In this document: one piece after another, positions 5,101 through 47,400 of the stretch
Numbering within the stretch: position 1 is the stretch's first letter
Layout: each line of letters starts with the position of its first letter
NCBI GenBank assembly: GCA_964035545.1
Contig: OZ037773.1
Coordinates: forward strand, 3,377,751 to 3,441,750
Direction: 5' to 3'
Source: Bugula neritina
Taxonomy: Eukaryota; Animalia; Bryozoa
Length of the DNA stretch: 64,000 bases
Notes under the pieces: model-generated
Told to the model about the DNA's origin: nothing
Seen by the model: only the letters and a program-made list of their open reading frames with translations
The model's database searches: none
Position numbers and translations under genes: made by a program

Positions 5101-6504
5101 TACTAGAATATTCTAAACAATACAGAACACTACACTGTGATCATAGTATTCAATTATGTCATCTAATTATGTATGTCATCTAGAATCTATCCTCTAATTC
5201 TGTAATATAATTTGAACATCTAAATCTAGCATCTAATTATAGCATGACAATGACATCTAATACAATAAACTTAGTTAGGGATGCAGTATTTATTAACCAG
5301 ATTTATACAAAGGTATAGAAGGTTAATCAGTATGCAACTGTCTGTCAATATATTACTTACCATAACCATGCATTAGAATCAACAGCGAGCTTTACCATAG
5401 CAAGTCTATGGTGAGCAGCAACCAGATTCTATAAAACACAGCAGCAGATTGAAACTAGTAATTTACTGAAAACTAGAACTCCCTGAAGAAATCTACTGTG
5501 ACTTTCTTCACATCTTTTAGATTATATTCAAGATGTATATAAATTGTACTAAAAAATGTCACAAGATAATAAGCCCAGTAACAGTATAACACAAAACTCA
5601 CATCTTTAGCATACTTTGCATTGGCCGGTACTAAAATTCCTTTGACCACTTTGTATCGACCTGTCTTGTGGAGGGCATCTCTGGCCAATTCTGAAGATAC
5701 CAGACATTATATGTTGACATTATCAAACATATCATAGTTGAAAATTTGCTTCATATTGCACAACGAAGTTTCAAATTTTGACAAAACTTGAAACATGATT
5801 GCTATACATGATATTTGTTAAAGACAGTGGGTTTTAGAGAAAAACACTTTCTACATAAAAAATTATGAAGCCAAAATGGTATATTTGTATGCACAAAGTT
5901 TTGCTTTCAACTTGATGATCTGATAGTGTGAAAAATATCATATAAAATGAAAGCAACAAAACAGGAAATTACACGAGGCTGTCTTAGAGAATAGAACTGT
6001 GTGACTAAACGGGTAGTCAGCAATAAACAGTTGAACATTGCAATCACTATTTCCATATCATCAACAAGTTAGAGTCAGTTGGGACTAAAACTAATACTAT
6101 TCAGACACAATACCTAGTAGCTCACTGCCACTAGCACTTTATTTCCTATCTGACAAACTGCGCAAATCAGATTTTTATACTGACTACTAAATTTGAATGA
6201 ACAGATGTTTTAGAATGATGGTAGTAAATAATACAGCATTAATTTCAACACTAATTTTGCTGGTGCACAATTTTAGATCAAACTATAATTGTTTTTACAG
6301 GCTAGCCACCCCCCCCCCCTCCCGGCCCCTACACACACACATCAAATTCAGTTTTAGCTGTGGTCTACCAACCAATAAGCAGCTACAATAGTGAAATTAA
6401 GTAGTAGCTGATATCATGAACTCACCTAATAATCTGAGATGTTTGTTAGTTATAGGGTTAAATGAGCCGGCACAATAAAGAATTACAGATTTTGGTAAAG
6501 ACAT
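2121..6504 (-). CDS. NMNAT: Nicotinamide/nicotinate mononucleotide adenylyltransferase (NMNAT1-like), 7 coding exons (~6504-6426, 5690-5602, 5428-5361, 4752-4586, 4402-4273, 3611-3450, 2250-2121)
   Basis: Spliced translation gives MSLPKSVILYCAGSFNPITNKHLRLLE (GSFNPITxxH motif), HRLAMVKLAV, DSWEVEQSEW, a PKRKRP NLS-like segment, LVCGSDLLRSFSVPNLW, GLVVVVREGSDP and [34 protein letters not shown]. Splice sites are canonical GT-AG with consistent phases. Confidence 0.95.
3201..3449 (-). repeat. Minisatellite, 27-bp unit, ~9 copies, abutting the NMNAT exon 6 donor
   Basis: Repeated cactacgtctgctaggagtacagagat; on the minus strand it begins at AAGATCAG|gtcagt. Confidence 0.93.
4823..4948. repeat. 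Perfect fold-back (57-bp arms, 12-nt loop) in an NMNAT intron
   Basis: attataaataaatatacgagaaacattgttgatttattactttattaggcaaagtaa (4823-4879) and its reverse complement (4892-4948). Confidence 0.92.
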
Positions 6505-7299
6505 TTTACTATCTGTAACACATCCGTCCAAGTCACAAGTTTACCAACTACAAAAAGAAAATTAAGATTGAAATCTGTTCAAAGCATTTTACTGTCACCA
6601 ATGAAAACTTCAACTAGTAAGAATCACTCCTCTCACTAGCCTTATACTTAATCTTATAAGTTATGACTGAAACTTCAATTTTAAATTAATTTTGTATGCA
6701 AGTTTAAACTCTGTTAATCATTTAATAGTAATGGTAATCAGTAACTGTACTTCGTAGTGTAATGTATTTCAGATTTTGCAGAAGATCGCTTTAAAATATT
6801 TTTATTAGTATTTGTATTTTTATTATAATTATGTATTACTATTACTATTAGTATTACTATTTTATACTATTAGTATTAGTATTAGTATAAAATTAAAATA
6901 TTACTATTAGTATATTTAATTTTATTGTTTATATTAATAATAATAATATTATTATATTTAAATGTATTTATTATGATAAATATTTATAACAATTAAATTA
7001 ATCATAATCATTAATCACTATGATTCAAGTATGATTTAGATTTTACAGGATTCCATTTCATTTTCATGTGTGAATCTGAAAGTGAAACTGAATCAATCAC
7101 AATGTGAATGTCAATGTGAATCATGAATGACAATGTCCTGCGTTGAATTTCGCAGTTTATTATTCTACTTTATAGTAAAAATATTAATATCCATAATCAT
7201 ATCCGTGTACTGTACAGACACTGATAGTGGTACTGTAACTCTAACAGTAACTATACCAATAGTAATACTATTATTACTATAAAATTAAATATAATATTA

Positions 7300-7870
7300 A
7301 TATTAATGATTATCTTGTAAGCGGATATTTAACTCCGTAAACTAATCCGAGATTTCGTAGAATCCTATACAAAAATAATTATGGATACCAGAATAACAAA
7401 AAATGCTGAAATAATATTGGTTATATAATTTCAAATTTAATTAAAAATTTAAATGACAAATAAAATACTTGATACGTCATTTCAAGAGTTTTACTTGTAT
7501 ATAATTAATATTATAAGGAGGAAATAGCACTGCGATATACGAAATAGAAACACGTATAAATTTATATACTTGAAACGGCGGGATATCTTATGGAGCGCAC
7601 TTTTAACGTTTTGGGCTACTATATGTCAACAGTATGATGACATTCGAATCCGTGAATCGATGCTAATACTGAAATGCTCATGAGGTGTTCTTTCTTTGGG
7701 GTTGGCGTCAATTTTTTCATTTCTATCATATTCAGTGGGGTAACTGTGACTCGAATGTCACAATTATTAATCACTGTCAATGGGCAATCTACAGTTTCTT
7801 TTTCATATTTTTGCAAAACGTTTAATTGTTCAACTTCAAATGCATTCGTCTTAGAGTTTAGGCTTTAAGT
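7300..7870. promoter_or_regulatory. Probable bidirectional promoter core between NMNAT and PRPF39
   Basis: Lies between two divergent genes whose first coding exons are preceded by splice acceptors; locally retains CpG (tacgtca, acggcggg, gagcgc). TSSs are not directly visible. Confidence 0.5.
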
Positions 7871-9202
7871 TTAAGTCATTATCATTATCATTATGATTAT
7901 CATTATTCATTATGATTATGATTATCATTAATTATGATTATCATTATAAATATAAAATTCAATCTGAATAATATTAAACACTATACTTATAATTTTAGTG
8001 CCGTATATGAGTGTACATCAGTATGACTATTATACGTCACTTATTCTGATTCTCATATTCATATTGATATTCACAGTGATACTGATAGTGATAGTGAGTG
8101 CACTTGAACAACTCAACTACTAGTACTAGTACTACTAGAACTAGGTTATAGTAATAGTTATAATGATAATATAAATCTTATAGTTCAAGTTATACTTATA
8201 GTTAAAAGTTATACTTATACTTATAGTTATACTTATAGACTAAATTTTAATTCAATCTTTGTTTTATACTTATAGTTATAGAGTTGGGCTATTAGTAATC
8301 GTTATAGAATTGGCATTACTAGTACTAGTAGAAATACTATAATTACAATGATTAACATTATGGTTACGATAATTTAAACATTAATTAAAATATATTGCTC
8401 TGCGGTTGCTTTTACTTTTAGTTTAGGCTTTAGTCTTAGGTTTAAGTTTAGCTGAAACAGAGTGAGAATAAAATAATAATTTCTACCATTGGCATTACCA
8501 GTGTAAATACTGGTTAGTGGTTACCCATTCTTATATTGAGGCTCATAGTCATACTGATTTTAAGTATCTATATACTAATAGTATAACTCTTAGTAATAGT
8601 AATGCTAATAATGATACTCAGTAAATGTGGTAGCATTAGTATTAGTGTTACTAATATTAATAATATTAGTAAAAGCAATATAAAAACATATTGATATAGT
8701 AGTACGGGTAGTTATACTTATGGGCAGACTAAATGTAATAATGATACACTTAGGCTATTAGTATCACAGTATCAATATGACTATTAGTGAATCACTTTAT
8801 TGGTCCTAAACACTGACAGCGATTAGTGAAAGATAGACTTTGTAAGACTAAGAGTTATAATAAATTACACTCACTTAGAAGCTTAGCCTTGATTAACCAC
8901 ATTCGCTCTATGGAGTCAAAGACAATGCATTTTATTTACTAATGCATTGAATTTAGTAATTGTGGTGGTATGATTATAAATCAGTTTTATCAATATTGTT
9001 GTGAGTATTATTAACTTATTCAAATTTAGTGATACTCAGTAGATTTATATTTATTATAGCTTTGCATCTGCATTGATCGTACTTTTATAGGTTGTGAATT
9101 TAAAAGCTTTACTCATCTTACATTTTTTTATCAAATTCTAGAGATCTACAGAAGTTATCTCTATTAAAACAGTTAGACCACAAAATACTCGACGCAAGAG
9201 TC

Positions 9203-12200
9203 ATGTCTGATGAGGTTTCTGCCCAGCCTGCTAATGCTGAGGAACAATTGGATTCCTTAGCCAGTGATTCGTCAATCTCAACTACAGAGAATATCAAATC
9301 CAGTGTGACAGCTAATGGAATCAATGATGATGTGACAACCCAAGAACATATATCCACAAGTGAAACGTAAGGCTTCTAAATTACAGAATCATTGGTTCCT
9401 TGAAATCGTGCCAGAAATTAAAAGATTTAAACTCTTTTTAGCATTTTAATTCTATTTTAAATTAAAGTAATTATGTTACAGAATGGAAACGGAAGTTGCT
9501 TTGGGTGATTCAGTTCAAGCTGTGAATGAGAACGAGGCTTCAAATAGTGGTAAGATTTCACATTTCTTTCTCACTGTGCACTCTGTTCTAACCTGGCCAT
9601 TAAATTACACTGTTGTTTAATTTATGCATTTGTGTGTGATTTGTTGAATTCATTTTGCAACTAGTAGTTTGGTGCTGGTGGCATTCATCAGGCATATTTA
9701 CATTTTAAAACTATAAATATGACTGATGAGTGCTACCAGCATGAAACTTTAGTTTCATAACAAAAAAACATCAAACAAATTGCTTTATTTGTTAACCATA
9801 TATCTACTTATTTTTCACTCTTAAATATTTCAGCAATTTTTATCTGCTGTTTGATAAATGATACTTTCAATAATTTATATTATGTTGGTCATTTCATAAC
9901 CATATCTAATTGTCCATATCATTCGTTGTAATAATAATATAATAAAATATCACATAGTTGCTATTAACTTTTTAGAGATCTAGTCTGCTTCCTTCTATGT
10001 CTTATATTGTCCATTCTATTTCTATATGCTACCCATTAACAAGCCCTCTATTTCTCTGTACTATCTTCTAGCAGGTGCTCTATTTCTCTGTACTATCTAC
10101 TAGCAAGTGCTCTATTTCTCAGTACTATATAATAGCAGGTGCTCTATTTCTCTGTACTATCTACCAGCAGGTGCTCTATTTCTCTGTACTATATACCAGC
10201 AGGTGCTCTATTTCTCTGTACTATCTACTAGCAGGTGCTTTATTTCTCTGTACTATCTACTAGCAGGTGCTTTATTTCTCTGTACTATATACTAGCAGGT
10301 GCTCTATTTCTCTGTACTATCTACTAGCAGGTGCTTTATTTCTCTGTACTATCTACTAGCAGGTGCTCTATTTCTCTGTACTATCTACTAGCAGGTGCTC
10401 TATTTCTCTGTACTATCTACTAGCAGGTGAAGACGTTTCAAGCAGCACGAAGACAGGGGAAGAAGCCGAGACAGTTGCTGCTGATGGCGATACTGGTAAG
10501 CCCAGATATACAGCATATTTTCTTTCCAGTATCTCCACTTTCTGCTTCTCTTTTGTTAAACTGATTGTACCATGTTTTTGCTTTCTACAACTGCGGCAGC
10601 CTTTCGTTATTTCCCTTTTGACAATTTGCACTTTAGACATGTTAGGCGATGCCACATAGAACAGGGAAAACTTGTCGCATACAGCGAAGTAGGGCTGTTT
10701 TTTGCCGGCTATAAGCTATTAACATACTAAACAAATTTACATCGTTTTTCATGTTATTGAAAATAACGGGTGAAAAAAATCCATAATGTAATATTTATAT
10801 AACAGGGACAGTAAATTCATGAGCAAATACATTTGGTCACTCCAGTTTTGCTAGCTGGGAGAGTATTGTGTGCAGCAGGTAACTCCCGCGGCAGATTTTT
10901 ACAGCATGTGGAATTCCCCTTCATGTGGCCAAACCTTTAACTTTATCCTTTGGCTAGGCACATTACACTTGCAGTCACTCTGTGTCTGTAGAATCATCAG
11001 GCAAACCCAAGAGATCTGCTGAAGTAGAGAGGCTGTGGGCTTTGGTGGACAAGAACAGACAAGACTTTGCCTCCTGGACTCAGCTGATAATGGTGGTGGA
11101 GAAAGAGGTGGGTTCCAGTAGCTGAGTCATGGAGGGCTAAGTTAGTGGTGGATATACTGGGGGGTTAGGTTAGTGGTGGATATACTGGGGGGTTAGGTTA
11201 GTGATGGAGAACTAGACTATTGAGAATGACAAAGCTATTACCAAGTTACATACAGTTTGAATAGCAATCATCCATGTTACACTGTCGGTTACCAAATATC
11301 ATGTTATTTTTGCTAACTCATTGTTGAGCAGTTTCTACATTGTCTCATTGCAGGGTTTGTTGGAAGGCCTGAGGGAAGTTTATGACGAGTTTCTACTCTA
11401 CTACCCCTTCTGCTACGGCTACTGGAAGAAACTGGCAGACTTTGTGGCGAGTAACCAAGGCAATGAAGCAGCGTATCAGGTAACCATCTCCGGTCGCACT
11501 CAGTCGCTGGTGCGGCGCCTGTGTCCCCAGCCGCCTTCTCGACAATGTATTGAAAGTAGTGAGGCTATTGTGTGAATACCGTTGTGCGTGTACTTCTAGT
11601 TGAACTGTTCAATGCTCTCTCACCACTATTTTGTAGCCCAACTGTTATGACTCCACAAGTAGCGTAGTAAGATAGCTACTTGTGGGGGTCGGATTTGATG
11701 CGTTGGTGCGCTGTCCTCAACGCAGCCCACCACTTGTATGTAACTATGAAAGAGCTGTGAGGAACTGAGCCGACAATATTCTAAGCACCCAGCTGCTCAG
11801 CCAGCCATCAGGCTCTGCTCTACTATGTAACCGTATGAGTAAGGTGGAAATACAACAATCACAGATGCATTACTTCCTACAAATTCTTGACTAAATGCTT
11901 TTCGTTGTGAGCTCTGGGCGTGTGTCTCTCTACAGCCGGCGTCTCTTCTCTGTTATTCAGGTGTACGAAGAAGCCGTAGTCGCTGTGGGTCTCAGCATCG
12001 ACGTGTGGGCCGCCTTTCTCGAGTTGTACATCGCCACAGAGAAACCCAGCGAAGAGATCAGGGCGTGAGTATCACTTCCTATATAACACAGTGCGCTATA
12101 CAATGGTTTTAGTTTTAGCTGATGTACCAGTGATATCTCTTCCACTTCTACAACATATCAAATCTGTTTCCTCATACAGTGTTCCCTCTACATCTCACGG

Positions 12201-15200
12201 TTCCATTTCACATGATTGGACCCCCATTTTGTGGCTTATGTATGTGTGTATGTGTATGGAAAGAAAATGGCCGAATGTAACGGATCAATGAGTTAAACAT
12301 GGTATTCCACTATGTCATGAATTGAGGTTTCGGGACCCGCAGCTTAGTGAGATATAGAGGGGGCATTGTATTCTTGATCTTTCTTACTCACTTCCTGCCA
12401 GTGTAGACTATAGTTGTGTCATGGCCTCTGGATTACACACAGACCGTGACTGTCAGGGTGAAATATTCTAGAACGTCTACTCTTGCAGGTTGTTTGAGCG
12501 AGCCATCAACACGTGTGGACTAGAGTTCAAGTCTGACAGGATCTGGGACATGTACATCGACTGGGAGGTGAAGAACAACCAGCTACTGAACATCACTCAG
12601 ATATACAGACGTCTGCTCGCCATACCTACTAAAAACTACACCATACACTACGAGAAGTATGTCCTTCCACTGAGCACTACAGGATTCATGTTGACTTTTG
12701 TGACAGTGGCTGTTTGCCATTATTTGTGTTGTTCTTTTTATTTTTTCATTTTAATTATATTTAGATGCGCAATTACTGGAGCTTTCTGTTTGTAAGGCAG
12801 ATATTTAGAATGATTCTATAAGCAGCTCCTAGCGGGGGGGGGGGGGTGGTGACTGAGTGCAGTAGTTTGTGGTCCTTGAGTTTGAAGTTGGAGTTTGTTG
12901 AAACCCTAAACCCCAAACCCCAAGCTTGGAGCTGCTCATAGCACCATTCAGATATTTAGAGTAACATTTCAGCTCAAACAGAAATCTGCTACTGGATACT
13001 ATGTTGTTATTTGTTGCGTTGCAGTGCAAAGGAACACGTAGAAAAACACGAGTTGTGGGAAATTCTCTCCCCTGAAGATATGAAAGCACTTAGGGTGAGA
13101 GCCAATGCTAGCCTCACTTCCAACACAGAAGGTGAGGGGGAGGAAGAGGGCAAGGACGCCCCTCCCGGTACTGCAGGAGACGAGGTTACAACTACCGCTG
13201 TCGATACGACAGCTGAAGATGATGTAGAGAGTGATCCACGTGAGTTAGCATTGGAACACAGGCTAGGCAGTGTTGTGTAGTTATCTAATAGAAGCACAGG
13301 CTAGGCAGAGTTGTGTAGTTATCTAATAGGAACCCAGGCTAGGCAGAGTTGTCTGTCTGGCTAGCTGCTAGCTCTCACTTCCTGTCATCTATTTAAATAA
13401 GTCATGTTGAGTGAAGGTAGACTGGCTTTCTTATTCGTTTGTCTAGTTTGGAGTAGTCTTCCCCTGGCTACTCAATCTGGGTCATTTTACTTAATTTAGT
13501 ACACACTAGAAATCTCCAGTTTTTAGCTATTTTTTCCAATTTAGCTGCTAATGACCATGGCTTTTTGCCCAAAACTAGTAAAATATGAATGGACACACCT
13601 AAATAATCAAGGTTCTGCTTAATTTTGCTTGATTTCCCATGTTTTTTTCTAATTATTCAGTCACTTTTGATTTCGGAGTTATGGTTTTTTCATAACACTT
13701 TGCAATCAAAAGTAGCTGAATAATTAGGAAAAAACCTAGCAAATCAAGCAAAATTAAGAAGAACCTTGATTATTTAGGTGTATTCATTCATATTTTACTA
13801 GTTTTGGGCAAAAGCCTTTGTTTATTAGCAACTAATTTGTGAAAAATAGCTAAAAACTGGAGATTTCCAGTGTGTACTAAAATTAATAAAATGACCCATC
13901 TCTTATGCACTCTGTAATGGTGTATTTCTAACTTGCTGTGTTCACAGAGACCATGTCGGAGGTGGTGAAAAAAGCTGCCAAGGACCTCCTACTTGCTGAC
14001 TTTGAACTCCTGGCTACACACAACGAGAAGGAGGTGAAGCTGCGTTGGGCTTTCGAGGATGCCATCAAGCGTCCGTATTTTCACAGTAAACCCCTCGGTA
14101 TGTCTCTTCTTTCACAGTATACCCCTCAGTTTCAAAAGATTTTTTATAATTATTAAGTTTATAGGACGTAAAGATATGTACCCAGCAGAATGTAGGAAAC
14201 CATAAGCATCATATAAATGTACATTTCTTTTACTTAGTTTTTTCATGGTGCTATATTGGCATTAAAACATGCCAAATGGCAGACAACACTACTATCAGTC
14301 TACAATTTTTACAATGGTGTTGGAATAAGTGAAACTTATATTGAAGGAGTTTTAAATTTATTCTGTTGTATGGTATACTCGTGTAGATAGCACACAGCTG
14401 AAGAACTGGAGGCGGTACTTAGAGTTTGAGATAGCCAATGGGGGTGAAGATAGAGCCATCTTCCTGTTTGAGAGATGTATGATAGCTTGTGCCCAGTATG
14501 AGGAGTTCTGGCTGAAGGTACTTGACACACATTACTGTGTCTTAATAACATTTCAGTTTTCTCTTACTCTATACAATCACTATATGTTACAGTAATATAT
14601 TGCTCTATGTATATATAACCACAGTTCAAGTGTATATTACAGTAATATATTTTTGGTTTAGGTGTATAATACAGTGGTATATAGCATGGCAATACATGTA
14701 AAGTCTGTTAGCTGTGCTGAACAGTGTGATATTGTGTCTTAGACTACAGTCCTTGGTGTATATTATACTGTAGCATGTATATAAAGGTATATATGTATTG
14801 CCATATGCAAAGCAAGCATATATTACTGTGGTCTCTGTATGCAACACACATACATATATTACAGTACACATACCTATATTACAGTACATACGTATATTAC
14901 AATGCACATACGTATATTACAGTACACATACCTATATTACAGTACACATACCTATATTACAGTACACATACCTATATTACAGTACACATACATATATTAC
15001 AGTATACATGCGTATATTACAGTACACATGCGTATATTACAGTACACATACTTATATTACAGTACACATACATATATTACAGTACACGTACCTATATTAC
15101 AGTACATACGTATATTACAATGCACATACGTATATTACAGTACACATACCTATATTACAGTACACATACCTATATTACAGTACACATACCTATATTACAG

Positions 15201-18200
15201 TACACATACATATATTACAGTATACATGCGTATATTACAGTACACATGCGTATATTACAGTACACATACATATATTACAGTACACATACATATATTACAG
15301 TACACAACGTATCTCGAGAGTCTTAGCCGACACACAGACGTAAGGAATGTCTACACGAGAGCCTGTCGCCAACATCTCCCATACAAAGCATCTATTCACA
15401 TCACCTGGGCCTTCTACGAGGAGCGTCAAGGTATCCCATAATTCTCGTTTACTGACAGCTTTATGAGTCATACTCAAGTTTCGTACTATTTGTAGTCGGT
15501 CGTGTAACCAACAGCTTGTCTGTACACTGCTGTTGACTGTTGAATTGTTTGTATTCCTTCATTATTTGTATTTATTGGAGTTGTCTTCTAATTGTGCAGG
15601 AAACTTTGACGAGGCCCTGGCGGTCATTTCCAACATAGAAATGCAGACTACAGACAACATGTGTGTGTTGAATCACAAGCTGAATCTACTCCGTCGTCAC
15701 GGCGATGACCTCAATGATCTCTTCACATCCTACATAGACAAGAAAGAGCTCAATGCTGACTGCGTGAAGCTTTTGACGAGCAAATATTCTCGATACCTTC
15801 TAAAGGTACCTCCACTCATTCATACTCTGTGTCACTTCGTGTCACTCTGTGTCACTTTGTGTCAGTGTCAGTAGGTGTCACTTTGTGTCACTCTGCTTCA
15901 CTCTGTGTCACTCTGCGTCACTTTGTGTCACTGTCAGTAGGTGTCACTCTTACTAGGTGTCACCTTATTTATATATAAATAGATTTCTAATAATGGTTCA
16001 AGACCAAAACTGTATTTGCTCACCGCTCGACATATTTGTTTACTTATATTTTCAAATTTCTTGTGTGTCTAGAATCTAGTTGTTTGCATGTTTAAGTTTT
16101 CTAAGTCAAACTGTATTCACTCCCTGCAAGACATGTTATTTTATTTCTATTTCTAGATAAAAGGAGATGCTGACAAGGCAGCAGAAGTATTGAAAGATGC
16201 AATCACCAAGAATCCAGTAAGTGTTAGTCTTAGAGTAGAGAACTCCTGTCTTGTTTACAAAATGGTCAAACAACTTCTCGAAGCCACTGTTATGTACATA
16301 AACACACAGACACTGCTTATGCTCTGTACTTACCATATAGAAATACTGTTTCTGAAACGTATCACCATGCATTGTACAGATGCCACATACAAATAGTATG
16401 TCCACCTTCACGCTAAGTTCACACTACTGAGTGTTTCACCTCTAGTATTTGGTATGATATATAAACCAAATAAATCTGTTATAAAAAGTAGATTTCACCT
16501 AAAAACTGTTGCTAAGTAGTAAAGCTCAAAGTCAGGTTTTAACTGGCATATAGTCTAGACTCTAGAATGAGTTGGTGAATAGATATATGTATTCAAATAA
16601 GTTTTTATGTGGTCATTACTTTTTATTTCTCACAACAATCAGTATCCATAATGCATTTACTGTTTGCTCTGCACACCACATATTATTCTATTTTTAGCTG
16701 CACGAGCCGTTCTACACTCAGCTCCTAGATGTAGAATATCAGAGACAGCCTCTCGACGAGGATAAGGTTCTCGCTGTGTTTGAACTCGTCAACGCGAGCT
16801 CTTTGTCTTCGGAGATAAAACAGAAGTTCTACTCGAGACGCTACGAGTTCATAGACGACCTTGGTTCAGATGTCACAAGGTCAGTGCATAGTTTTACTGC
16901 CGAGTGTGGTGATTGGCTATCGCATCAAGCCCGGAACTTGTGATATAATCAGTATATAATGTAAAAACTCACGCCGGTTTATAGTCACCATCCCTGTGAG
17001 AACCAGGCTAAGGGCTTATTCAGATGTGACACAGGAGCAATTATGACTGGATGCTCTTCCTAACATCACCCATGGCCTTTACTGGGGTTTGAACCCATGA
17101 CTTCGTGCTCACTAACCAAACGCTCTAACCCCTAGACTACGGCTGCTCTCTCAGTATAGACTGTGGTCCTAGTCGTATTTTAGTAAAGCTGTATACTCAG
17201 TCTTTTGCTGCATAAGAGTTGTTTGGTTGTTTCCTAGCAACAGCTCCATAATGCCAAGGTTATCTTCTACAAGTACCTAATAAGTGTGATTTGTTAATAA
17301 TTATGCAGAGTATTTATATTTATTCCATTCTATTATAACTTCACGATATTCTCCTGGTGATTCAAAACCATTCCACCAAATTAACTCAATATTTTACTCC
17401 TCGTTCACTAATTATTTTGCCATTTGAACTAAATATATGTTGTGTTTGTTACTATTTTTATCTTTCTTTAAAGTGAATACATACCAAGCAAAACCCAAAG
17501 CACACATTCCCTTTTAAATATGCTGCTGCTGCTGACATTCTGTGGCAGAGATTATTGGTTGTAATTATTATTGATTCTTTGATTTATGTTTAGAGTAGGA
17601 AGGCTGCCAAAGTTCTATAAATAGTTGTATCCAGTTGAGCTGAATGTTCTCTGAGCAGCATGTTATTAATGTGGTGTCGCCTCCGCTGTCTGTGTATGTG
17701 ACTATGTGTTGTGTTGTATAATAGTGTTTCTGTTAATTTAGGTTGTACTCCCTCTACCAGGAGCTGGAAGAAAATATGTCTGCTGCATCTAAAGATAAGA
17801 AACGAGCTCACTCTGCTACTCCCAGGTACGTTGTACTCACCTGTGTGAGGTCATACCTGGAATAGTTACCCGTGTGATATAATACCTGTATTTATGTGTA
17901 CTAGTATATCTCCATCTTCACTATTATATAGTACACTCTTCACTATTATATAGTACACTCTTCACTATTATATAGTATACTCTTCACTATTATATAGTAT
18001 ACTCTTCACTATTATATAGTACACTCTTCACTATTATATAGTATACTCTTCACTATTATATAGTATACTCTTCACTATTATATAGTACACTCTTCACTAT
18101 TATATAGTATACTCTTTACTATTATATAGTACACTCTTCACTATTATATAGTGTACTCTTCACTATTATATAGTATACTCTTCACTATTATATACAATAC

Positions 18201-18762
18201 TCTTCACTATTATATAGTATACTCTTCACTATTATATAGTATATTCTTCACTATTATATACAATACTCTTCACTATTATATAGTATACTCTTCACTATTA
18301 TATACAATACTCTTCACTATTATATAGTATACTCTTCACTATTATATAGTGTACTCTTCACTATTATATAGTATACTCTTCACTATTATATAGTATACTC
18401 TTCACTATTATATAGTATACTCTTCACTATTATATAGTATACTCTTCACTATTATATAGTATACTCTTCACTATTATATAGTATACTCTTCACTATTATA
18501 TAGTGACAAGACTGTGGATGCCAAGAAAGCCAAGACCTCGATGTATACTAACAACGGCACTGCTGCCACTGGGGCCTACTCCAGCCAATCGTATCATCAG
18601 CAGCAGGCAGCCAACTACGGCAGCAGTGGTCAGGACTGGAACTCGTACTACCAGCAGCAGGGCATGGACTACAGTCAGTACGGGGCATACGGCCAGCAAG
18701 GCTACTATCAGCAGGGCTATGGCGGGTACACAGGCTACGACTACAATACTGGCTACTATTAA
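9203..18762 (+). CDS. PRPF39: Pre-mRNA-processing factor 39 (U1 snRNP HAT-repeat protein), multi-exon, Gln/Tyr/Gly-rich C-terminal tail
   Basis: Exons translate to [118 protein letters not shown], typical of PRPF39. Last exon is 18504-18762. The start exon (ATG 9203) is inferred from phase continuity. Confidence 0.95.
9718..9759 (+). ncRNA. Minimal type I hammerhead ribozyme motif, with a degenerate inverted copy at ~9655-9700
   Basis: tatga-CTGATGA-gtgct(acc)agcat-GAAA-ct(tt)agt-T-tcata: stem I tatga/tcata, intact core, stem II gtgct/agcat, very short stem III. Confidence 0.65.
10046..10429 (+). repeat. Splice-acceptor minisatellite, 32-bp unit x12, ending at the PRPF39 exon that starts at 10427
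   Basis: Unit gtgctctatttctctgtactatctactagcag; the last copy is followed by GTGAAGACGTT (G-E-D-V). Confidence 0.95.
12177..12368. mobile_element. Tc1/mariner-type (pogo/Tigger-like) MITE
   Basis: TA|cagtgttccctctacatctcac ... gtgagatatagagggggcattg|TA: imperfect ~22-bp TIRs with TA target duplication. A diverged partial copy lies at ~19960-20072. Confidence 0.8.
13479..13897. mobile_element. Palindromic non-autonomous DNA transposon (fold-back MITE, 419 bp) with 4-bp TSD ATCT
   Basis: gggtcattttac...taaaatgaccc termini; the two halves are imperfect reverse complements over ~200 bp; atct flanks both sides (13475-13478, 13898-13901). Confidence 0.88.
14846..15306 (+). repeat. Splice-acceptor minisatellite, ~20-bp unit x~23, ending at the PRPF39 exon that starts at 15301
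   Basis: Unit tatattacag|tacacatacc; the last copy reads tatattacag|TACACAACGTATCTCGAG (YTTYLE). Contains a 218-bp higher-order duplication. Confidence 0.95.
15826..15962. repeat. Short 10-bp-unit repeat (gtcactctgt) just downstream of a PRPF39 donor
   Basis: Repeated gtgtcactct/gtgtcacttt. Confidence 0.8.
16957..17150 (-). mobile_element. tRNA-derived SINE in a PRPF39 intron
   Basis: Minus strand: A box-like tagtctaggggttag, B box gggttcaaaccc, then body gatgttaggaagagcatccagtc. Flanked by direct repeat tcagtata (16949-16956, 17151-17158). Confidence 0.8.
17915..18504 (+). repeat. Splice-acceptor minisatellite, 22-bp unit x~27, ending at the PRPF39 terminal exon (18504)
   Basis: Unit tatactcttcactattatatag; the last copy is followed by TGACAAGACTGTGGATGCC. 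Confidence 0.95.
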
Positions 18763-34571: not shown

Positions 34572-36621
34572 GCCTTGTAACTTCTACTTTCTAAATTCTT
34601 CTGACCAGTACCTAAAATAGCAGACACACACTGTGGTGCTGAGTACATGTTTTAAAACTCCAAATTAAGTCTTTATCACACAGATCAGGTTTCTATGTAC
34701 AACAAACTTGAAAAAACACACCACAAACAACACATGGATACGAAGAAAGTTTTTATATAATATTTACTTCTGCCGTTATTAACTGTAGATTTTTTGATAA
34801 TAATTGCCTAAGATTCGAATCAATTTTAACTTTGAAATAATATTGATAGCAGATCAAAATGAAATACTAATAGTAATTGTAAAGTGAAATATTTCAAACA
34901 ATAATTATAGTATCGATGAAAATATAATTTAAGTTTAAGATCGACTTGGCTTAAAATTGAAGTTACTTTCCTACAATTTAAAAAGAAAATTACAATAGGC
35001 ATAGCCAATATGGCAATAACTAAAAGTATAAGTACAACCATAAGTATTAGATTTAGTATAACTATTAAGTATTAACTATTAGCATTACTATTAGTATTAG
35101 TCATACATAATAATAATCATATGACGGTTAATACTATCACTAGCTTAGCTCAACAGACACACCGAGTGATGACCTCAAATGCTTCCGTTGTGACCGCATA
35201 TGCAGATCACTGATAGGACTCAGAAGTCATCAAGCTACTCACAAACAGCTGTAAGCAGACATCATACTTTACTTGGAGGGATAGCAAAGAGAGAGACTAT
35301 TAGTATTACTATTACTAATACTAATACTAATACTATTAGTAATAGTATTAGTATTAGTATAATAATAACAGTAATTATTACATTCACCATAACTAATAAG
35401 ATAAGTATAATTATTAGTAATGCTTATAGTTATACTAGAGGGTATAGTTTATAGCTGTTCCAGTTGGTCAAAGTGGAAGAATAACATTAAGTTTAACTGT
35501 AACTGTTAGTGTTAGACGCAGAGTTAGTGTTACTGTTACTGTTAGTGTTACACTAACTCGGTAACTGTAAGAATAAGAGTTAGATAAATGTAATTACTAC
35601 TAGTCCTAAATTACTGAAAGTAAAATTAAATGATAACTGACAAACATCAAACAGATCTTACTCTAACTTCAAGCTAGAATAAACATAAATATAAATATAA
35701 AATAGAAATTCAAGTTGCACTTTTCAGCTCAAACAAATGAAAATTTTATTGAAGTTGACTCAACCTTGACCTAGTATGAAAGCATTTGTCATTGAGAAAA
35801 ATTGACAGCTTTCAGAATGATACCCAATGAATAGGAGAGAATATTTTTAGTTCAGTTTTGATAACGCTATCTTTGTAGCGATTCTTTGACGTCCGTACCG
35901 ATAATTTGTGCAAACTCTTGCTAGCACGCACGCAAATTTAATACATGTGCGATATCTGTTATTTTATACCTACGTGCGCTTTAATTTAAACCGAGTAATG
36001 TTCATCCAGTTTTGTCAGTTTCCAATCTTGCTAATGAATTTGATGGTCATAATTATAATATTAATAATAATGATAAAGATTATAATTTATGTAATGGATT
36101 GCCTATTGTGTTTTCATATTACTATTAGTACTGCATTTACTATTAGTATAACTATAAGTATTAGTATTAGTATTACATTTAGTTTTACTGATTTAGTTTT
36201 AGTATACCTAAAATCTTTTATTATTATTACTCATTGCTTATAGTTATTAGATATAGTATAAGTATAACATTACAAATAAGCCTATTACTAGAGTATTAGT
36301 AGTAGTACTATAACTATAGTAATGGTCGATAAATCTATAACTAGAACTTACAAGTTAAAGCTGTTTTCTTTAAAATGCATGCTTTTTACCAGTTCTTACT
36401 GAATTTGTTATTAAGTCAGCATCACAAAATAAACGTCAACAAAATAAATCCTCGGCAAAAAGGTATAAAAAGTTTCATCATGAATTATGCAACTTAATTT
36501 ACATTCTAAACATTCATTTGATTTTTAGGACTTGCATTTATGATGCTGATATCTGTCCATTACTGACCCCCCAAAAACAAGGTAGACTACTATTTTGATA
36601 CAAAAAACTGCTACAATCACC

Positions 36622-39600
36622 ATGGATAATCTAAGGTGTGTGAACTCAAAGAGAAACTCGTGGTTATTTGACGCTGAGCATGTTTGGACATCAACCACAA
36701 TGGATCAGGTAAAATACTCTACATAATAAAATATTGAGGCTGCTGCATGTAAAGGAGGTACTGCCAGCACTAAGTATAGCTATGATGTAATTTATAGATA
36801 GAAGTTGAGGAGAACGTGCAGGACATCTATGATGCCTTTCAGGAGAAACTGTTGACTGAACCAGCAGAAGGTGATCTACAGAGAATTCCAGAGTAAGAAT
36901 GATAAACGCTTATGTTTTTGGTGAAAAGTTGTTATCATGTTTTGAGTTGCTATAAATCAGGCTGTATTAGTTTGAATTCAAATAAGTTTAGGGTGTTAGT
37001 CGATACATGATATATTATGGGAGAGGTATAGGTTAGACAAGTGGACAACAGAACTGGCGTGCCATAGTAAGGGTACAGTAAAAGTCTTTGTGTATCTAAT
37101 ACTAAGAAATACTAGCTTTTGTTATATAATTTTTTTTGCATTTTTTTGCTCTACAAATTATATTTTATATACTCATTTTCATGTGAATGGAACATGTATT
37201 CTGTGAGTTGACCTCATATTGTGGGAATTAGGCTCTTTCTGAGTGTGAAGTTCATATTTATTTTAATGCCCAACTACAAAATCAAAACTGTCTTTTTTGT
37301 TTAGAGAGTTATTATTGAAAAGGAAAGCCTTGGAGAGTTTCCTAATGAAAGGTTCAACAAACCTGCCTGGAAGTTACTGCTGTCTAGACGCCAGTAGGCC
37401 GTGGCTATGTTACTGGATAGTTCACAGCTTAGAGCTGTTGGGTATAGAAGTCCCTGCTTCACTTGGTTCCAGGTTTGTGTCATCAACTCTATATTTAGTT
37501 TGAGCATCTCTATTTTTAGGCACTAATAACACCGGCTGTACATGTTCTAGCTCATGCTTAGAAGAGAAGCTAGTAAATTGAGTTTGCGAAAGTCTTTTAA
37601 TTTAAGCAGTCTGAAAAATAATTTGCTTCTATTTAAAATTTTCATGTTAATTTTCTGTTAAATAATATTATATCAATATGGAATACTTGCGAAATTATTC
37701 AGTATTTAAACTTTCTGTTTATTTATAGAATGGTGAAGTTTTTGGGTAAATGTCAATCAGAAACTGGGGGTTTTGGAGGTAGGTAGATTTCTTGTGTGTA
37801 CTCTTTATATTAAGCTGGTATAACTGTGACTGATAATGACTCATACTGTACCTGTATACATCATGAAGTGTTTTTCTAGGAGCATACAACTCCTAATTCC
37901 TCTCACACTGTAGGTGGTCCTATGCAACTGCCCCACTTGGCTCCAACATATGCTGCAATAAGCACTCTCTGTATTATTGGCACCGAAGAAGCTTATGCTG
38001 TTATAGACAGACACAAACTGTACGACTTCCTCTTACAAATGCACCAATCAGACGGCTCCTTTATTATGCATGAAGGAGGAGAAATAGATATTAGGTAATG
38101 TCTGATATAATATTTTATAATTTTTCCGGATTTTTCTTTCGGAAATTTTTGCTAATTATTTTTTTTTTTCTATATCTATATGGTTTTAAATTGTGTTGTA
38201 CAAGTAATTAGAGTTAGCAAACCTTTGATTGTCATTCCATCAGATAGTGTTTGATAGGTTGTTCAGTGTTTCAGTTATGACTCTATGATATCTATAGTTA
38301 GTAATATGTAAGCAAAACTTATACCGGGAGTTATCTTCTCTTTAGAGGGTGTTATTTAGCTGCAGACGTTGCCAGATTAGTCAATATAGTTTCAGAAAAA
38401 TTGTTTGAGAACACAGCTCAATGGATTGTACGGTGAGGTTTACTCAACATCAAAATGCATTTTGTATGATAATAGCATATGTCATATAATATAATATATT
38501 GAATATATAAACTTTATATAATTTCTATTGACATGTTTCAGTTTATAGTCGTTGCTAATATGATGGCTGTTGTTGAAGTTTTCCTTTTAAATGCTAATAA
38601 TAGACTGCGAAGACTAGGGATCTGCTATACCAATTTATTCAGCAAACTAAGTCTGGAATATCTAGTGCTTCTGTTTAAATCTGTGCCCGTAAAGTACTAC
38701 TATTGCGTGTGCTCAGGAATTTTGGATGAATGAATTTATTAGCATAATTTCTCTGACAGATGTCAAACATATGAGGGGGGCTTTGGAGGAGTTCCCGGCA
38801 TGGAGGCACATGGTGGTTATGCTTTTTGTGGGATTGCAGCTCTCACCTTACTGGGTCATGAGAGATTGTGCGATGTCGATGCTCTTCTGGTAAGTTACTG
38901 TGGTTATGTGGTATCAAACCTATCATGGGTTGTAATCACTTTATGACGTAATCTTGTTTTAATGTATATTTTGTTACTTTATAGCATATTTATACAATGT
39001 ATAGTAATTAAACCTCATATTTATGACTCTACTTTTTTGGAGTTGTCAGTTCATGTCTGGTGGTTTTAGCGCTGGACTGTAAATAGGCAGATGCAGTTTG
39101 AGGGTGGCTTTCAAGGACGTACCAACAAATTGGTGGACTCGTGTTACAGTTTCTGGCAATCAGCTATTATTCCGGTAATCTCATCAATGACTGAGTACAA
39201 CACACCGAAATCTCTCTTCCATAGCGGCGCACTGCAAGAGTACCTGCTTCTGTGTTGTCAACACCCTTATGGAGGCTTCATAGATAAACCTGACAAGTTA
39301 GTAGATGCCCAGTATTGGGGAAAATTTAACAAGCTGTGTATTACTACTCATTGCATAGTTTGATAATTTAGTTTTACTTTTCACCTATTTATTTAACAAG
39401 TTAAAGGAAACTCAACAGTTTCAATAAGGAATTGTTTCCTCTTACTGCGGGAATCTAAGTTAGTCATAAGTAAAAACAGCGGAAACAACTTTCAATAGAC
39501 TATTTAATTGCTTTAATAGTTTTAAAAATTTTATTAAATTGAAATTTTTATTGACAGATCTTCTCACTACAATAACTTCACAATATATTACACATATATT

Positions 39601-40317
39601 ATAGAGCAATGCCGATAGGTTTGCTACTGTATGTAGACATAGAGACTATTATAGAGCAATGCTGATAGGTTTGCTACTGTATGTAGACATAGAGACTATT
39701 ATAGAGCAATGCTGATAGGTTTGCTACTGTATATAGACATAGAGACTATTATAGAGCAATGCTGATAGGTTTGTTACTGTGTGTAGACATAGAGACTATT
39801 ATAGAGCAATGCTGATAGGTTTGTTACTGTGTGTAGACATAGAGACTATTATAGAGAAATGCTGATAGGTTTGCTATTGTGTGTAGACATAGAGACTATT
39901 ACCACACATGCTATTCGTTGAGTGGACTTTCTATCAGTCAGAACTTCACCGGTTCCTCTGCCACTAAGCCTCATGTCATCGGAAAGTCTGACAACCTCAT
40001 GGTTAGTGCCCAGCATATAACCTTCTATTACTAATAGATGCACTGTGATATGGTACTCATTCTGTATTAACTGTTGTGTTCCCGTATTGGCCTGCTGTGT
40101 ATGCGGGTGTGTATATCTATATATGTATATGGTCTAGCTAGGACTTAACTTTGAATACAACTTACGTTTTAATTCACCAGTCTGGATTAATATTAGAAGT
40201 TATCCTGTACTAATTTCTATGTTGTAGATTCCCGTCCACCCAGTCTACAACTTGGGTATTAAATCAGCAATTCGGGCCACTGATTATTTTCAGAAGTTGC
40301 CTTCAGTTAAGACATGA
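36622..40317 (+). CDS. FNTB: Protein farnesyltransferase subunit beta, ~10 coding exons
   Basis: CLDASRPWLCYWIVHSLELL, GGFGGGPMQLPHLAPTYAA, HEGGEIDIR, CQTYEGGFGGVPGMEAHGGYAFCG, RQMQFEGGFQGRTNKLVDSCYSFWQ, GGFIDKPDKHRDYYHTCYSLSGLS, HPVYNL. Confidence 0.97.
39597..39902 (+). repeat. Splice-acceptor minisatellite, 50-bp unit x6, overlapping the start of the FNTB exon at 39887
   Basis: Unit atagagcaatgctgataggtttgctactgtatgtag|acatagagactatt; the last copy continues ACCACACATGC. Confidence 0.95.
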
Positions 40318-44400: not shown

Positions 44401-47400
44401 TTGTATATAACTATTAGTTAGTATATAACTATTAGCTAGTATATAACTATTAGCTAGTATATAACTAGTAGTCAGTAGTATAGTATATAGACAGTTACCT
44501 GGTACCAACGAGTGACCAGCTCAGCACTGGGGTTCCGGAAGAACCCGCCAACATCGGCTCCAGTGAAGGTGATACCTACAGAGTAAAGACAATTCAGCTG
44601 ACATGTCACAGTATAGAGAATCTGACTGAAATATCGTTCACAGAAAACTTGCAATATGTAAATTTCAGCAGCCAAACTCTGAAACACACACATATTAGGT
44701 TCTGGTTTTTCAAATTCAGTGACACAACACAGGAAATGTTATCTTTGGATTGTAGGCAAAATATTCTATCTCCTGCATACTTGTGGTAAAGGAACCATTT
44801 ACCTGTAACAGACTGAGAGAGAATCATAGGAATGGATATCTTGAGGTGGCTCCACTCCCCCATGTTGTCGCCTGTCCACACAGCGCCGTGTCTCTGTGAG
44901 CCGGCATAGAAAGCTCTGGACAGGACGAAGGGTCGTAGTGAACCCCCAGATCTCTGCACCAAACCCTCAGATGTGGCTTGTTGCTGTCGAAAATGACGAA
45001 ACAAGTTGAGAAAACTCATCCAAATAAAACAAACATTGACATTTGATGCAATCCAATGCTCTGTATTTGTTTCATCAGAATGGCTGTTTGCTCAAATTTT
45101 ATATGTTTTATTTCAAAATATGAGACTCAAGGAAAGAAGCTGACAGCAAGAAACACACTACACGCACCACATAGAAGCCGTAGAGGTTGTGAACATCTCT
45201 GTGCTCCCAGCCGTCCGCGTGCACCGCATCTTTATGCATCGTAATCTCCGGGCCGTTGAATACACTCGGCTCGTTCATGTCGTTCCAAGTGTAAACATCC
45301 TCGCTGGTGCCTTTGTAGTCCTCGTAGTTGAACTTAGATGCCCACCAGCTTCTCATGTCAGCTCTGGTAAAGTCAGGGTACGAGGAGGACCCTGTAATGG
45401 ACAACGACTCATTAGTAAGAACTCAAGCTAATCTAGATGACTCTTACGTGCAAGTAGTAGGAGAGAAAAAACAACCCTCGCAAAGTGCTTTCTCTAAAAA
45501 AGGATAAATTTTTAAAGTGGAGCCCCTGTACTCTATCCGCAGAGTACACACGTTTGTAAAGATAAGCAAACACCCCCCAAAGGAGCAAGAGTGGCATATG
45601 TCTGAATGTTTATGGTCCATTATAATATTTCGTAACTTATTCATCACACCTGATGGGAGAAGAGTGTTGGAGGTGATGGAGCTGTGAAAACTATTGCAGC
45701 GCTATAAATATAGGTCTTACAGCCACAGCCAATAGGAACTACCAACACATGCAGCTGCCTTTACAGCACCCGACACCACAACACCGACAGCGCGGCAGCA
45801 TAGAATGATCACCTACCGGGCCAGCACCAGCCGTCAAACTCTTTCCCGTCTCTCTTGACAAACAAGTCCCTGTCCTTCAGCTCCTTGTATATGTGGTAGT
45901 TGTCATCTCTCTTGATATGGGGGTCAACAATAGTCACCAACTTCCTGCCAGTTGACTTGAGTTTAGCCACCATGTCGTGGGGAGTAGGAAACTTGCCCCC
46001 GTCCCACGTGAAGTACCTGTTTCAACATGTCAACAGTCTGCTGATGGTATATAAGCAGAAGGTACAACTTTAAGCTTTTAACTGAATGCTGGAGGTTGCA
46101 TGTCATTAAGCACTTCTTTGCATTCAGATCAGCAGACTTACTGATTTGAACCAACATGGTGTTTTGCACGTGAATCGTAGAAAGACCAAATTGTTAAAAA
46201 TTGAAGAATTATTTTTATTTTACAGAAATTTCCTCCATTCAGCATTATGCATGCATTTCTTTTATTCACGTATTTTCAACTTCAAATTTCTTGAAGACCA
46301 TCAAATCTAGAAAGCAGTTTCATATAACAACGATTCTTGTAATACTTGAAGAGTCACAAACCGTTTCCCATCAGTGTGCTCGATGTCTAACCACACAACA
46401 TCCAGAGGAATGTCATGGAGCTCGTAGTTGTCATGGATCTGCTTCACGTCTGCCTCGTCATTGTAGTTCCACCTGCTTTGGTGGTAGCCGAGAGAGAAGA
46501 TCTACAGAAAGAGAGAAGATCTACAGGATAAGAGAAGATCTAGAGAAAAAGAACATCAATAGAAAGAGAATATATACATAGAGATGGTGTCTGCAAAGAA
46601 AACTAATGGTAAGAGTACTACAACCAAGGAGCCCTTAACGCAATAGAAATAAATACACTATCCGTAGAAAAAGCTTTTGGGAGAAACAAACTAAAGAAAT
46701 ATTATAATAAACGAACTTACGGGAGGCAAGTTGGTGGTGCCCGTCAAACTAGCGTACTGCTTGAAGAGATCAATAGGGGAAGGTCCCATCATAACGTAGA
46801 GATCGATGACACCGGATTCAGCTACCCACCTCGTATCCATCTGCAAATGAATGTAAAGGTAAAGCTAATGGCAGCAGCTGTAATAGTAACAATGATAGTA
46901 GTAGCAGCAGCAGCAGCTGTAGTAGTAGTAGTGGTAGTAGTAGTAGTAGTGTTAGTGGTAGTAGTAGTACTAGTATTAGTACTAGTAGTAGTAGTAGTAC
47001 TAGTAGCAGTATTAGGAGTGGTACACAGTACCTGAGGAACAGTGTTATCTTGAGTCACAAAGTCTACCAGTTTTCCCAGAGTAGACCTGTCTGCTTTACT
47101 AGATCTGACGTCTACCCACATCTCACTAGGATTATTCCAGAACACACCTGTAACGCGTGACATGATGTGTAAACAACAATCAACTTGTAGTATACCGTAT
47201 ATAGACATGTATCCCTGTATACGCACGCATAGACAGTGTACACTATGGGTACGTGTGTGGAATATACATATTAGTAGAAATTGGGTCAAATACTAATTCA
47301 GGGAAAAGCGATGCAAGGGAAATGGTGATTGGCTGATTGACCAATGCTCATGTGTTAATTATAAGCCCAACTTACTACACTGTAGGTACACACACACGCG

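Follow-up and report, generated by a model that had tools for sequence, protein, structure and literature searches.

We find that the two AT-rich tracts on either side of the presumed NMNAT/PRPF39 promoter belong to a genome-wide class of sequence that adjoins CpG-bearing cores and marks the transcribed side of promoters, inside the first intron in the two genes whose first junction is fixed. The gene pair lies in a 64-kb stretch of DNA (C9:3377751-3441750 of a 216-Mb assembly), here called the window, whose coordinates are used unless another sample is named. The tracts keep a degenerate 6-bp lattice of A and T in which the orientation of one C:G pair per hexamer is scrambled, and in this they are unlike ordinary microsatellites, both within this genome and by comparison with other organisms. 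Throughout, S stands for C or G, W for A or T, and ANT for A, any base, T. The window was analyzed together with 200 kb from another chromosome (C1:100001-300000, the C1 sample), giving 264 kb from two chromosomes. We tentatively propose that the tracts were grown by slippage beside active start sites and combine this growth with a process, or a constraint, that flips base pairs.

Periodic tracts flank the NMNAT/PRPF39 promoter core

At this locus a CpG-bearing core of about 540 bp (7321-7859), presumably a bidirectional promoter with two short first exons, separates a left tract on the NMNAT side (6640-7320) from a right tract on the PRPF39 side (7860-8830). Measured against 300 dinucleotide-preserving shuffles, identity at a lag of 6 bp is 0.513 in the left tract (z=10.1) and 0.525 in the right (z=15.1), and the core between them has no lag-6 periodicity (z=1.7). 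The ANT trinucleotide behaves in the same way: pairs of ANT six bases apart number 56 on the left, where 16.1 are expected (z=10.2), and 80 on the right, where 18.5 are expected (z=13.8). The share of positions occupied by ANT is 0.200 in 6640-7320 and 0.176 in 7860-8830, compared with 0.107-0.108 in the remaining window, and the observed/expected ratio (O/E) of ANT co-occurrence in the two tracts runs from 2.1 to 2.7 at a lag of 6, from 1.5 to 1.7 at a lag of 3 and from 1.8 to 2.1 at a lag of 12.

The 6-bp and 3-bp phasing of ANT, which a preliminary description of this DNA had pointed out, is thus real, with z of 10.2 and 13.8 for ANT pairs at lag 6 and O/E above 1 at lag 3. The four series of hexamers quoted there are all present in the sequence: agtgaa-actgaa at ~7081, actgat-agtgat-agtgag at 8079-8097, agttat-acttat at 8189-8237 and actttt-agttta-ggcttt-agtctt at 8414-8437. 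Its boundaries need some trimming. A caller that uses a 100-bp sliding measure of lag-6 identity minus identity at other lags returns 6773-7305 and 7834-8808 as periodic, and 6640-6770 is weakly periodic. Degenerate arrays of period 6/12 are called by Tandem Repeats Finder (TRF) at 6803-6913, 7071-7128 and 7258-7312 in the left tract, and the arrays of the right tract extend from 7876-7954 to 8631-8672. The core holds 17 CpGs in 7301-7800, and its CpG observed/expected ratio (o/e), taken per 100 bp, is 1.1-2.3, where the median of the window is 0.41; its G+C content (GC) is only 0.18-0.38.

A lattice of TA steps and single C:G pairs

In length the tracts range from 0.2 to 1 kb; they are AT-rich (GC ~0.26), with TA every 3 bp and one C:G pair of scrambled orientation every 6 bp. 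TA autocorrelation reaches O/E values of 1.9, 2.7, 1.8 and 2.1 at lags 3, 6, 9 and 12 and recurs to at least lag 24; for C-or-G the O/E is 2.0 at lag 6 and 0.89 at lag 3. Typical units read A-S-T-A-W-T, with ASTGAT, ASTTAT and ATSATT as relatives, and the enriched trinucleotides are TTA, TAA, CTA, ACT, ATT, AAT, TAG, AGT, TAC and GTA. Where two AST triplets stand six bases apart, the triplet between them is also ANT in 58% of cases, and its centre is filled about equally by all four bases. The steps of duplication that TRF picks out measure 12, 18, 24 and 31 bp, and short inverted repeats within the lattice occur at 3.3 times the expectation from composition.

As had been suggested, the signal is strand-symmetric: ACT and AGT are about equally frequent on the presumed sense strand (134 vs 156). 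A signal that is equal on both strands points to a cause at the level of DNA and argues against an RNA signal. Neither patchiness nor GC has any nucleosome-scale periodicity, their autocorrelation being flat from 45 bp onwards. There is also no 10-bp A/T periodicity, the lag-10 O/E being 0.93 for AA/TT and 1.19 for AAA/TTT, and the peaks fall at lags 6, 12 and 18.

A genome-wide class that adjoins CpG cores

The lattice is abundant across the whole assembly. Per strand we count 49,008 matches to (ASTNNN)5AST and 5,918 to its reversed counterpart, and the pattern (ASTAAT)4AST has 6,556 matches compared with 225 for its reversed control. In the 264 kb, 30 tracts were called, covering 4.4-6.1% of the DNA. 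With a CpG core defined as a 300-bp window of CpG o/e at least 1, 20 of the 30 tracts lie within 400 bp of a core; random placement yields 6.75+-2.3, with a maximum of 16 in 2000 trials. Tract-core-tract triplets are found in the C1 sample at 65.8-67.5, 86.6-88.0, 99.9-101.4 and 108.6-109.4 kb. The tracts themselves are not CpG-island-like, with a GC of 0.26 and CpG at 0.39 of the mononucleotide-shuffle expectation.

Within the 64 kb, degenerate TRF arrays of period 6 (66-88% matches) cluster at three places only, ~6.8-8.7, ~35.0-36.3 and ~50.8-52.3 kb, and each cluster is a pair of tracts flanking a CpG-bearing core. The recurrence of the pattern noted at the other two divergent pairs of the window is therefore borne out, the same tract-core-tract layout being present at ~35.8 and ~51.7 kb. 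Apart from a trinucleotide tract (46.4-47.0 kb) and a duplication of 285 bp (59.8 kb), the caller detects no comparable stretch elsewhere in the window. The pattern had also been said not to be evident around the Kunitz, GPCR and RhoGAP starts. For two of these the caller agrees, finding no tract upstream of the GPCR or the RhoGAP motif (62579); the Kunitz start was not located by motif search.

Tracts lie on the transcribed side and, in two genes, inside the first intron

Two genes with a junction that can be fixed by homology place the tracts relative to exons. The G-patch gene of the third locus has an exon 1 of 70 nt (51883-51952, plus strand, ATG at 51883) followed by a GTATGA donor at 51953, and an exon 2 at 52728-52780 on the same strand. 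Joined, the two exons encode 41 aa in frame, and this peptide has a Pfam G-patch match across the junction (residues 9-40, E=3.3e-8, 33.8 bits with a cut-off of 22). Because homology fixes the junction, the tract at 52133-52340 (lag-6 z=4.3), which is the right tract of that locus, lies inside the first intron (51953-52727). In a second example, a TRIC-channel gene on the minus strand of the C1 sample has its exon 1 at 13716-13830, with a GTGAGT donor, and an exon 2 that starts at 12849 behind a ttttag acceptor and has a Pfam TRIC match (E=4e-28). The two exons join in frame, and the called tract (12884-13729) lies almost wholly within the first intron (12850-13715), which it fills.

The sidedness of the tracts is visible at promoters with a gene on one side only. 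On the other side of the TRIC promoter, where a P450 gene has its 3' end, the caller finds no tract. A second one-directional core (C1 sample, 96.5-97.1 kb) has a tract only on its left and the 3' end of a USP gene on its right, which rules out a divergent partner there; we take the left as the gene side, a minus-strand open reading frame (ORF) lying further in that direction. Tracts thus mark the transcribed side, and for the G-patch and TRIC genes they stand between exon 1 and exon 2. Divergent promoters have one tract on either side, plausibly because both genes have a first intron of their own. The proposal of a promoter-proximal mark is accordingly half right: the tracts are tied to CpG-bearing promoter cores, also in the independent 200 kb, but they are not upstream DNA, being in the first intron for two genes and on the gene side only at two promoters.

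For NMNAT and PRPF39 the position of the tracts is read from splice acceptors. The NMNAT exon that carries the ATG (6504) spans 6426-6547 on the minus strand and is preceded by the acceptor ttttctttttgtag at ~6548, 44 bp upstream of the ATG. Contigs from RNA runs have joints at 5428|5602 and 5690|6426 and reach 6549, after which ~21 letters depart from the adjoining DNA. On the other side, the PRPF39 exon with the ATG (9203) spans 9142-9366 on the plus strand behind the acceptor tttttttatcaaattctag, 62 bp upstream of the ATG; the RNA-run contig begins exactly at this acceptor (9140) and has a GT..AG joint at 9366|9482, and the assignment to PRPF39 comes from a PRP39 HAT repeat on a later exon. 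Acceptors ahead of both ATG exons imply that each gene has an intron in its 5' untranslated region (5'UTR), with an upstream exon towards the core. Based on these acceptors and on the two other genes, the 5'UTR introns of NMNAT and PRPF39 most likely contain the two tracts.

Two further observations concern these genes. Exon sequence in the contigs, which come from other runs of the same organism, is ~5-8% off the window (7/89 and 7/124 letters; 5376-6549 and 9140-9549), which suggests very high polymorphism, enough for the tracts to be tested in population samples. A poly-C run and then (CA)n stand at 6303-6345, in the NMNAT intron that separates 5690 from 6426.

The scrambled C:G pair sets the tracts apart from microsatellites

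Arrays of (ASTAAT)4AST are rarely uniform in S. Across the genome 40 are all-C and 63 are all-G, that is 103 of 6,556 (1.6%), where random S predicts 6.25%. The related pattern (ASTWAT)4AST has 9,339 matches, 70% of which are all-A at W; W, being mostly uniform, thus acts like a position of an ordinary microsatellite, whereas S departs from this. For an external control we used 120 public metagenome contigs of many origins that carry (ASTAAT)5AST. There 114 of 128 arrays are uniform, as are 526 of 551 27-mer windows (95.5%), and the probability that a neighboring unit has the same S is 0.97. Head-to-tail repetition is present in the tracts as in a microsatellite (lag-6 identity 0.51-0.61, z=10-17), but the purity of a single unit (TRF matches 66-88%, 1.6% uniform) and background-like differences between units are not. 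The early characterization of this DNA as more than a simple microsatellite is therefore supported by uniform S in 1.6% of arrays here as opposed to 95.5% in the contigs of other organisms.

The differences between units are themselves unusual. Among 1,325 isolated lag-6 differences, C<->G changes account for 28%, where composition predicts 5.5%, A<->T changes for 27% and transitions for 29%. In the window's intronic minisatellites the corresponding shares of C<->G, A<->T and transitions are 7.6%, 10.8% and 59% (Fisher p=1e-21 vs the tracts), so that complementary transversions account for 55% of differences in tracts and 18% in minisatellites. Context matters: a central C/G is swapped for its complement in 46% of cases in A_T and 38% in T_A, compared with 6% in A_A and 15% in T_T. 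Swaps are seen in 26 of the 30 tracts. With only 1.6% of arrays uniform and the lattice intact, neutral decay of pure arrays cannot account for the tracts. Two explanations remain: the central base pair may flip at a rate far above that of any other change, or AST/TSA may be kept by an orientation-blind constraint while impure arrays persist.

A few of the metagenome contigs contain the same scrambled ACT/AGT hexamer tracts, namely L059 (Ga0115005_10312264, 1-1238), L086, L144, L158 and L167, and in these the tracts alternate with GC-richer segments that bear CpGs. A search with the non-repeat part of L059 gave no match in this genome, an empty result that falls short of proof. This suggests that L059, a marine contig of unrelated appearance, comes from another organism and that the phenomenon may extend beyond this species.

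Tracts at the second and third loci of the window

At the second locus the left tract (34886-35730, lag-6 z=12.1) is interrupted at ~35110-35295 by a single-copy fragment that encodes a C2H2-like motif; a CpG core (35801-36049, o/e at least 1) and a right tract (36020-36347, lag-6 z=7.6) follow. The non-periodic insert (35110-35300) encodes ...KCFRCDRICRSLIGLRSHQATHKQL*, which contains the C2H2-like motif, and an (ASTATT)n array comes directly after it. It could be the 3' end of a retroelement; within the 264 kb, 35110-35295 is single-copy.

At the third locus the left tract (50750-51315) has a lag-6 identity of 0.613 (z=16.8) and lies upstream of the ATG exon of a GH31 glucosidase gene on the minus strand (ATG 50536). 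An acceptor-like ttgcag precedes this exon, and the GH31 domain is on a later exon. The CpG core of the locus (51600-52001) holds exon 1 of the G-patch gene described above.

Possible origins of the tracts

We give a probability of roughly 45% to a combined reading in which slippage-grown tracts beside active start sites are subject to a base-pair flipping process or constraint. The tracts would grow by local duplication in steps of 6, 12 and 18 bp, and this growth would take place in the transcribed zone beside active start sites, which are presumably unmethylated. A lineage-specific process or constraint would then swap the central base pair of the self-complementary ANT and TNA, C:G<->G:C and less often A:T<->T:A, and the swapping would keep the arrays impure, which should make them slippage-resistant and long-lived. 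Synthesis by polymerase zeta (Pol zeta) with Rev1 at hairpin-prone short repeats may serve, by analogy only, as one documented route from GC to CG. In yeast, GC->CG transversions that depend on Pol zeta/Rev1 occur at hairpin-forming short repeats (PMC3874155). In the yeast case, as in the tracts, C<->G transversions are in excess and the repeat DNA holds many short inverted repeats; it differs in being somatic and in a mutant background, whereas here the pattern would be germline, at saturation and limited to A_T/T_A centres. The alternative once offered for the pattern, a mutational footprint near active transcription start sites, forms part of this best reading. Flipping in the germline at ANT/TNA centres of the first transcribed kb beside active promoters, or a selected strand-blind element after the start site, would be new in either case, and we see a minor but real chance of this.

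Several points weigh against the combined reading. Only about one third of the CpG cores with o/e at least 1 in the sample carry tracts, and the sample for location is 264 kb from two chromosomes. Matching windows overlap in the genome-wide pattern counts, so that their p-values are nominal. The RNA evidence consists of contigs only, which lack 5' ends, and most of the depth over the tracts comes from look-alike loci; the intronic position of the NMNAT and PRPF39 tracts is to that extent inferred. The arrangement of C and G is not extra palindromic (142 inverted repeats, and 150+-12 once S is permuted within tracts), and as the W position is unscrambled too, there is no sign of stable hairpins. 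Uniform runs below random (1.6% vs 6.25%) are not predicted by simple fast flipping alone, and their rarity could equally reflect selection for, or survival of, impure arrays. The context dependence would be explained just as well by an orientation-blind constraint on AST/TSA, for example a protein that recognizes the triplet symmetrically, as by a mutational process. The Pol zeta/Rev1 link, lastly, is an analogy taken from yeast.

Alternatively, the lattice could be a selected element acting at the DNA level, kept for a physical property of the first kb (flexibility, melting, nucleosome affinity or a CpG-free gap between unmethylated promoter and methylated gene body) or read by a protein at the symmetric AST/TSA. 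Such an element would fit the retention of the A and T of the triplets and of the 6-bp spacing of S together with free S orientation, the strand symmetry, the fixed position relative to CpG cores and first exons, and the few CpGs in tracts (o/e 0.39). Uniform arrays below chance and the strong departure from the same arrays in other organisms are also in its favor. We nevertheless consider it rather unlikely, as patches and GC lack nucleosome-scale periodicity and as homopolymers, poly(A) signals and CpG are no scarcer than in the genome's other AT-rich DNA. A weak/strong constraint, moreover, predicts S swaps in every context, whereas swaps are confined to A_T and T_A, and many hexamer variants coexist and drift, unlike a binding site. 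Products of mobile elements are improbable. Here the tracts would be the 3' tails of retrotransposons without long terminal repeats, copied with slippage, or target-site duplications or excision footprints left by cut-and-paste elements at open gene 5' ends. Transposon excision of the hairpin type leaves complementary-base changes, and on general grounds the 3-bp lattice with its complementary-base changes would resemble such footprints; the C2H2-like fragment at 35110-35295, followed directly by an (ASTATT)n array, also fits. That fragment is single-copy, however, and no other tract in the 264 kb adjoins a recognizable element. The tracts are mosaics of 0.5-1 kb made of many unit types, with the intron filled from the donor to near the acceptor, and they contain neither an excess of 2-6-bp reverse-complement replacements nor inverted footprints beyond a single base.

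The units also resemble splicing signals, including branch points (TACTAAT, TACTAAC), 5' splice sites (GTAAGT, GTAATA) and 3' splice sites (TATTAG), and the tracts, in which such hexamers are frequent, lie in first introns. Arrays that bind U1/U2, decoys or splicing enhancers could account for this, and in Amphimedon 5' splice site motifs are reportedly enriched downstream of start sites (PMC4773876), a precedent that counts only should this be the organism. Strand specificity is expected of an RNA signal, whereas ACT and AGT are balanced on the sense strand and the lattice equals its own reverse complement; nor are poly(A) signals depleted (6.2 vs 4.9 per kb in other AT-rich DNA), and we regard first-intron RNA signals as very improbable. 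Least probable of all, and refuted here, are decaying microsatellites of the ordinary kind or chance in AT-rich DNA. TRF does call period-6 arrays in the tracts, and short tandem repeats are known to be enriched near yeast and human gene starts (PMC3566118). Neither accounts for z values of 10-17 against dinucleotide shuffles, an 8- to 30-fold excess over reversed-pattern controls genome-wide, a substitution pattern unlike that of the window's own minisatellites, or uniform arrays at 1.6% where the same pattern elsewhere has 95.5%.

A number of specific candidates were tried and rejected. Avoidance of poly(A) signals was dropped on the densities of AATAAA/ATTAAA just given, which are higher in the tracts, and avoidance of homopolymers because AAAA/TTTT, at 13.2 per kb in tracts vs 19.1 in other AT-rich DNA, is not distinctive. 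A hairpin-optimized arrangement of C and G was discarded on the permutation result (142 vs 150+-12), and micro-inversion because reverse-complement replacements of 2-6 bp are not in excess. For a retrotransposon 3'-tail repeat there was one candidate only (35110-35295), single-copy in the 264 kb. Lastly, N6-methyladenine (6mA) at ApT was set aside: the lattice is not ApT-based, and the AMT1 pathway is reported as lost in animals (PMC12695648).

Relation to known systems and significance

In concept the class resembles repeats at start sites and other periodic intronic DNA, but it lacks what defines either of them. With microsatellites and cryptically simple DNA the tracts have in common a tandem periodicity of 3/6 bp, a patchwork of related units and duplication steps of 12/18/24 bp; they differ in that one position (C:G) is scrambled and the others are uniform, and in favoring complementary transversions over transitions. 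Yeast and human promoters are also known to have simple repeats close to where genes start (e.g. PMC3566118). Those 5'-end repeats are likewise simple-sequence DNA within ~1 kb of gene starts, whereas the tracts lie downstream of exon 1, in the first intron, as strand-symmetric mosaics of 0.2-1 kb on each transcribed side.

The 10-bp periodic A/T clusters (PATCs) of C. elegans are found in introns of germline-expressed genes. Like the tracts they are a non-coding, periodic, lineage-specific class of intronic sequence tied to a subset of genes. The period of the tracts, however, is 3/6 and not 10, they consist of TA steps and single C:G pairs and not of A/T runs, and they are confined to the start-site-proximal intron. 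The analogy to CpG islands and PATCs drawn in the preliminary description thus holds at most at the level of function for PATCs, as the 10-bp A/T periodicity is missing, and fails for CpG islands, of which the tracts are the opposite. A+T-rich islands, scaffold-attachment regions and base-unpairing regions also occur near promoters. These too are AT-rich blocks of 0.5-1 kb by promoters, often of divergent pairs, but they have no defined lattice, and the tracts are likened to them by sequence alone. We found no description of the lattice by keyword or 12-mer text search, nor in PMC4773876, PMC8896464 or PMC5429095, and papers on Amphimedon queenslandica promoters, histones and accessibility make no mention of repeats, periodicity or first introns. 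If the organism is that sponge, as run metadata and a base composition of 35% GC suggest, the tracts bear on a leading model for how animal gene regulation arose.

The class covers several percent of the sampled DNA directly after exon 1, and it therefore bears on gene models (5'UTR introns and start sites) and also affects read mapping and motif searches around promoters. One scrambled base pair per hexamer would imply either a new context-specific mutational process tied to transcription initiation or a strand-blind structural constraint after the start site, and both readings are testable with methylome, histone H3 lysine 4 trimethylation (H3K4me3), transposase-accessible chromatin (ATAC) and population data. 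A CpG-free flexible spacer between promoter and gene body is a candidate role. If the tracts were a selected element, their role would be comparable to that of CpG-island flanks or PATCs, used irrespective of strand.

Other repeats in the samples

Some repeats in the samples differ from the first-intron tracts. In the C1 sample, a 0.5-kb ACT/AGT array at 192283-192799 (G000:C1:292283-292799) has a C/G string of period 3, with an 18-bp unit such as GGC; it does not stand beside a CpG core and is an example of higher-order amplification of the lattice. In the window, an (AGT)n-type trinucleotide array with uniform S (46825-47023) lies within a long, Thr/Ser-rich ORF on the minus strand. Although detected by the caller, it behaves as an ordinary trinucleotide repeat without scrambling. 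Lastly, internal introns contain long minisatellites with units of 20-50 bp and 91-96% matches (10046-10429, 14846-15306, 17915-18504, 39597-39901 and others), a repeat regime distinct from the first-intron lattice in which unit differences are mostly transitions.

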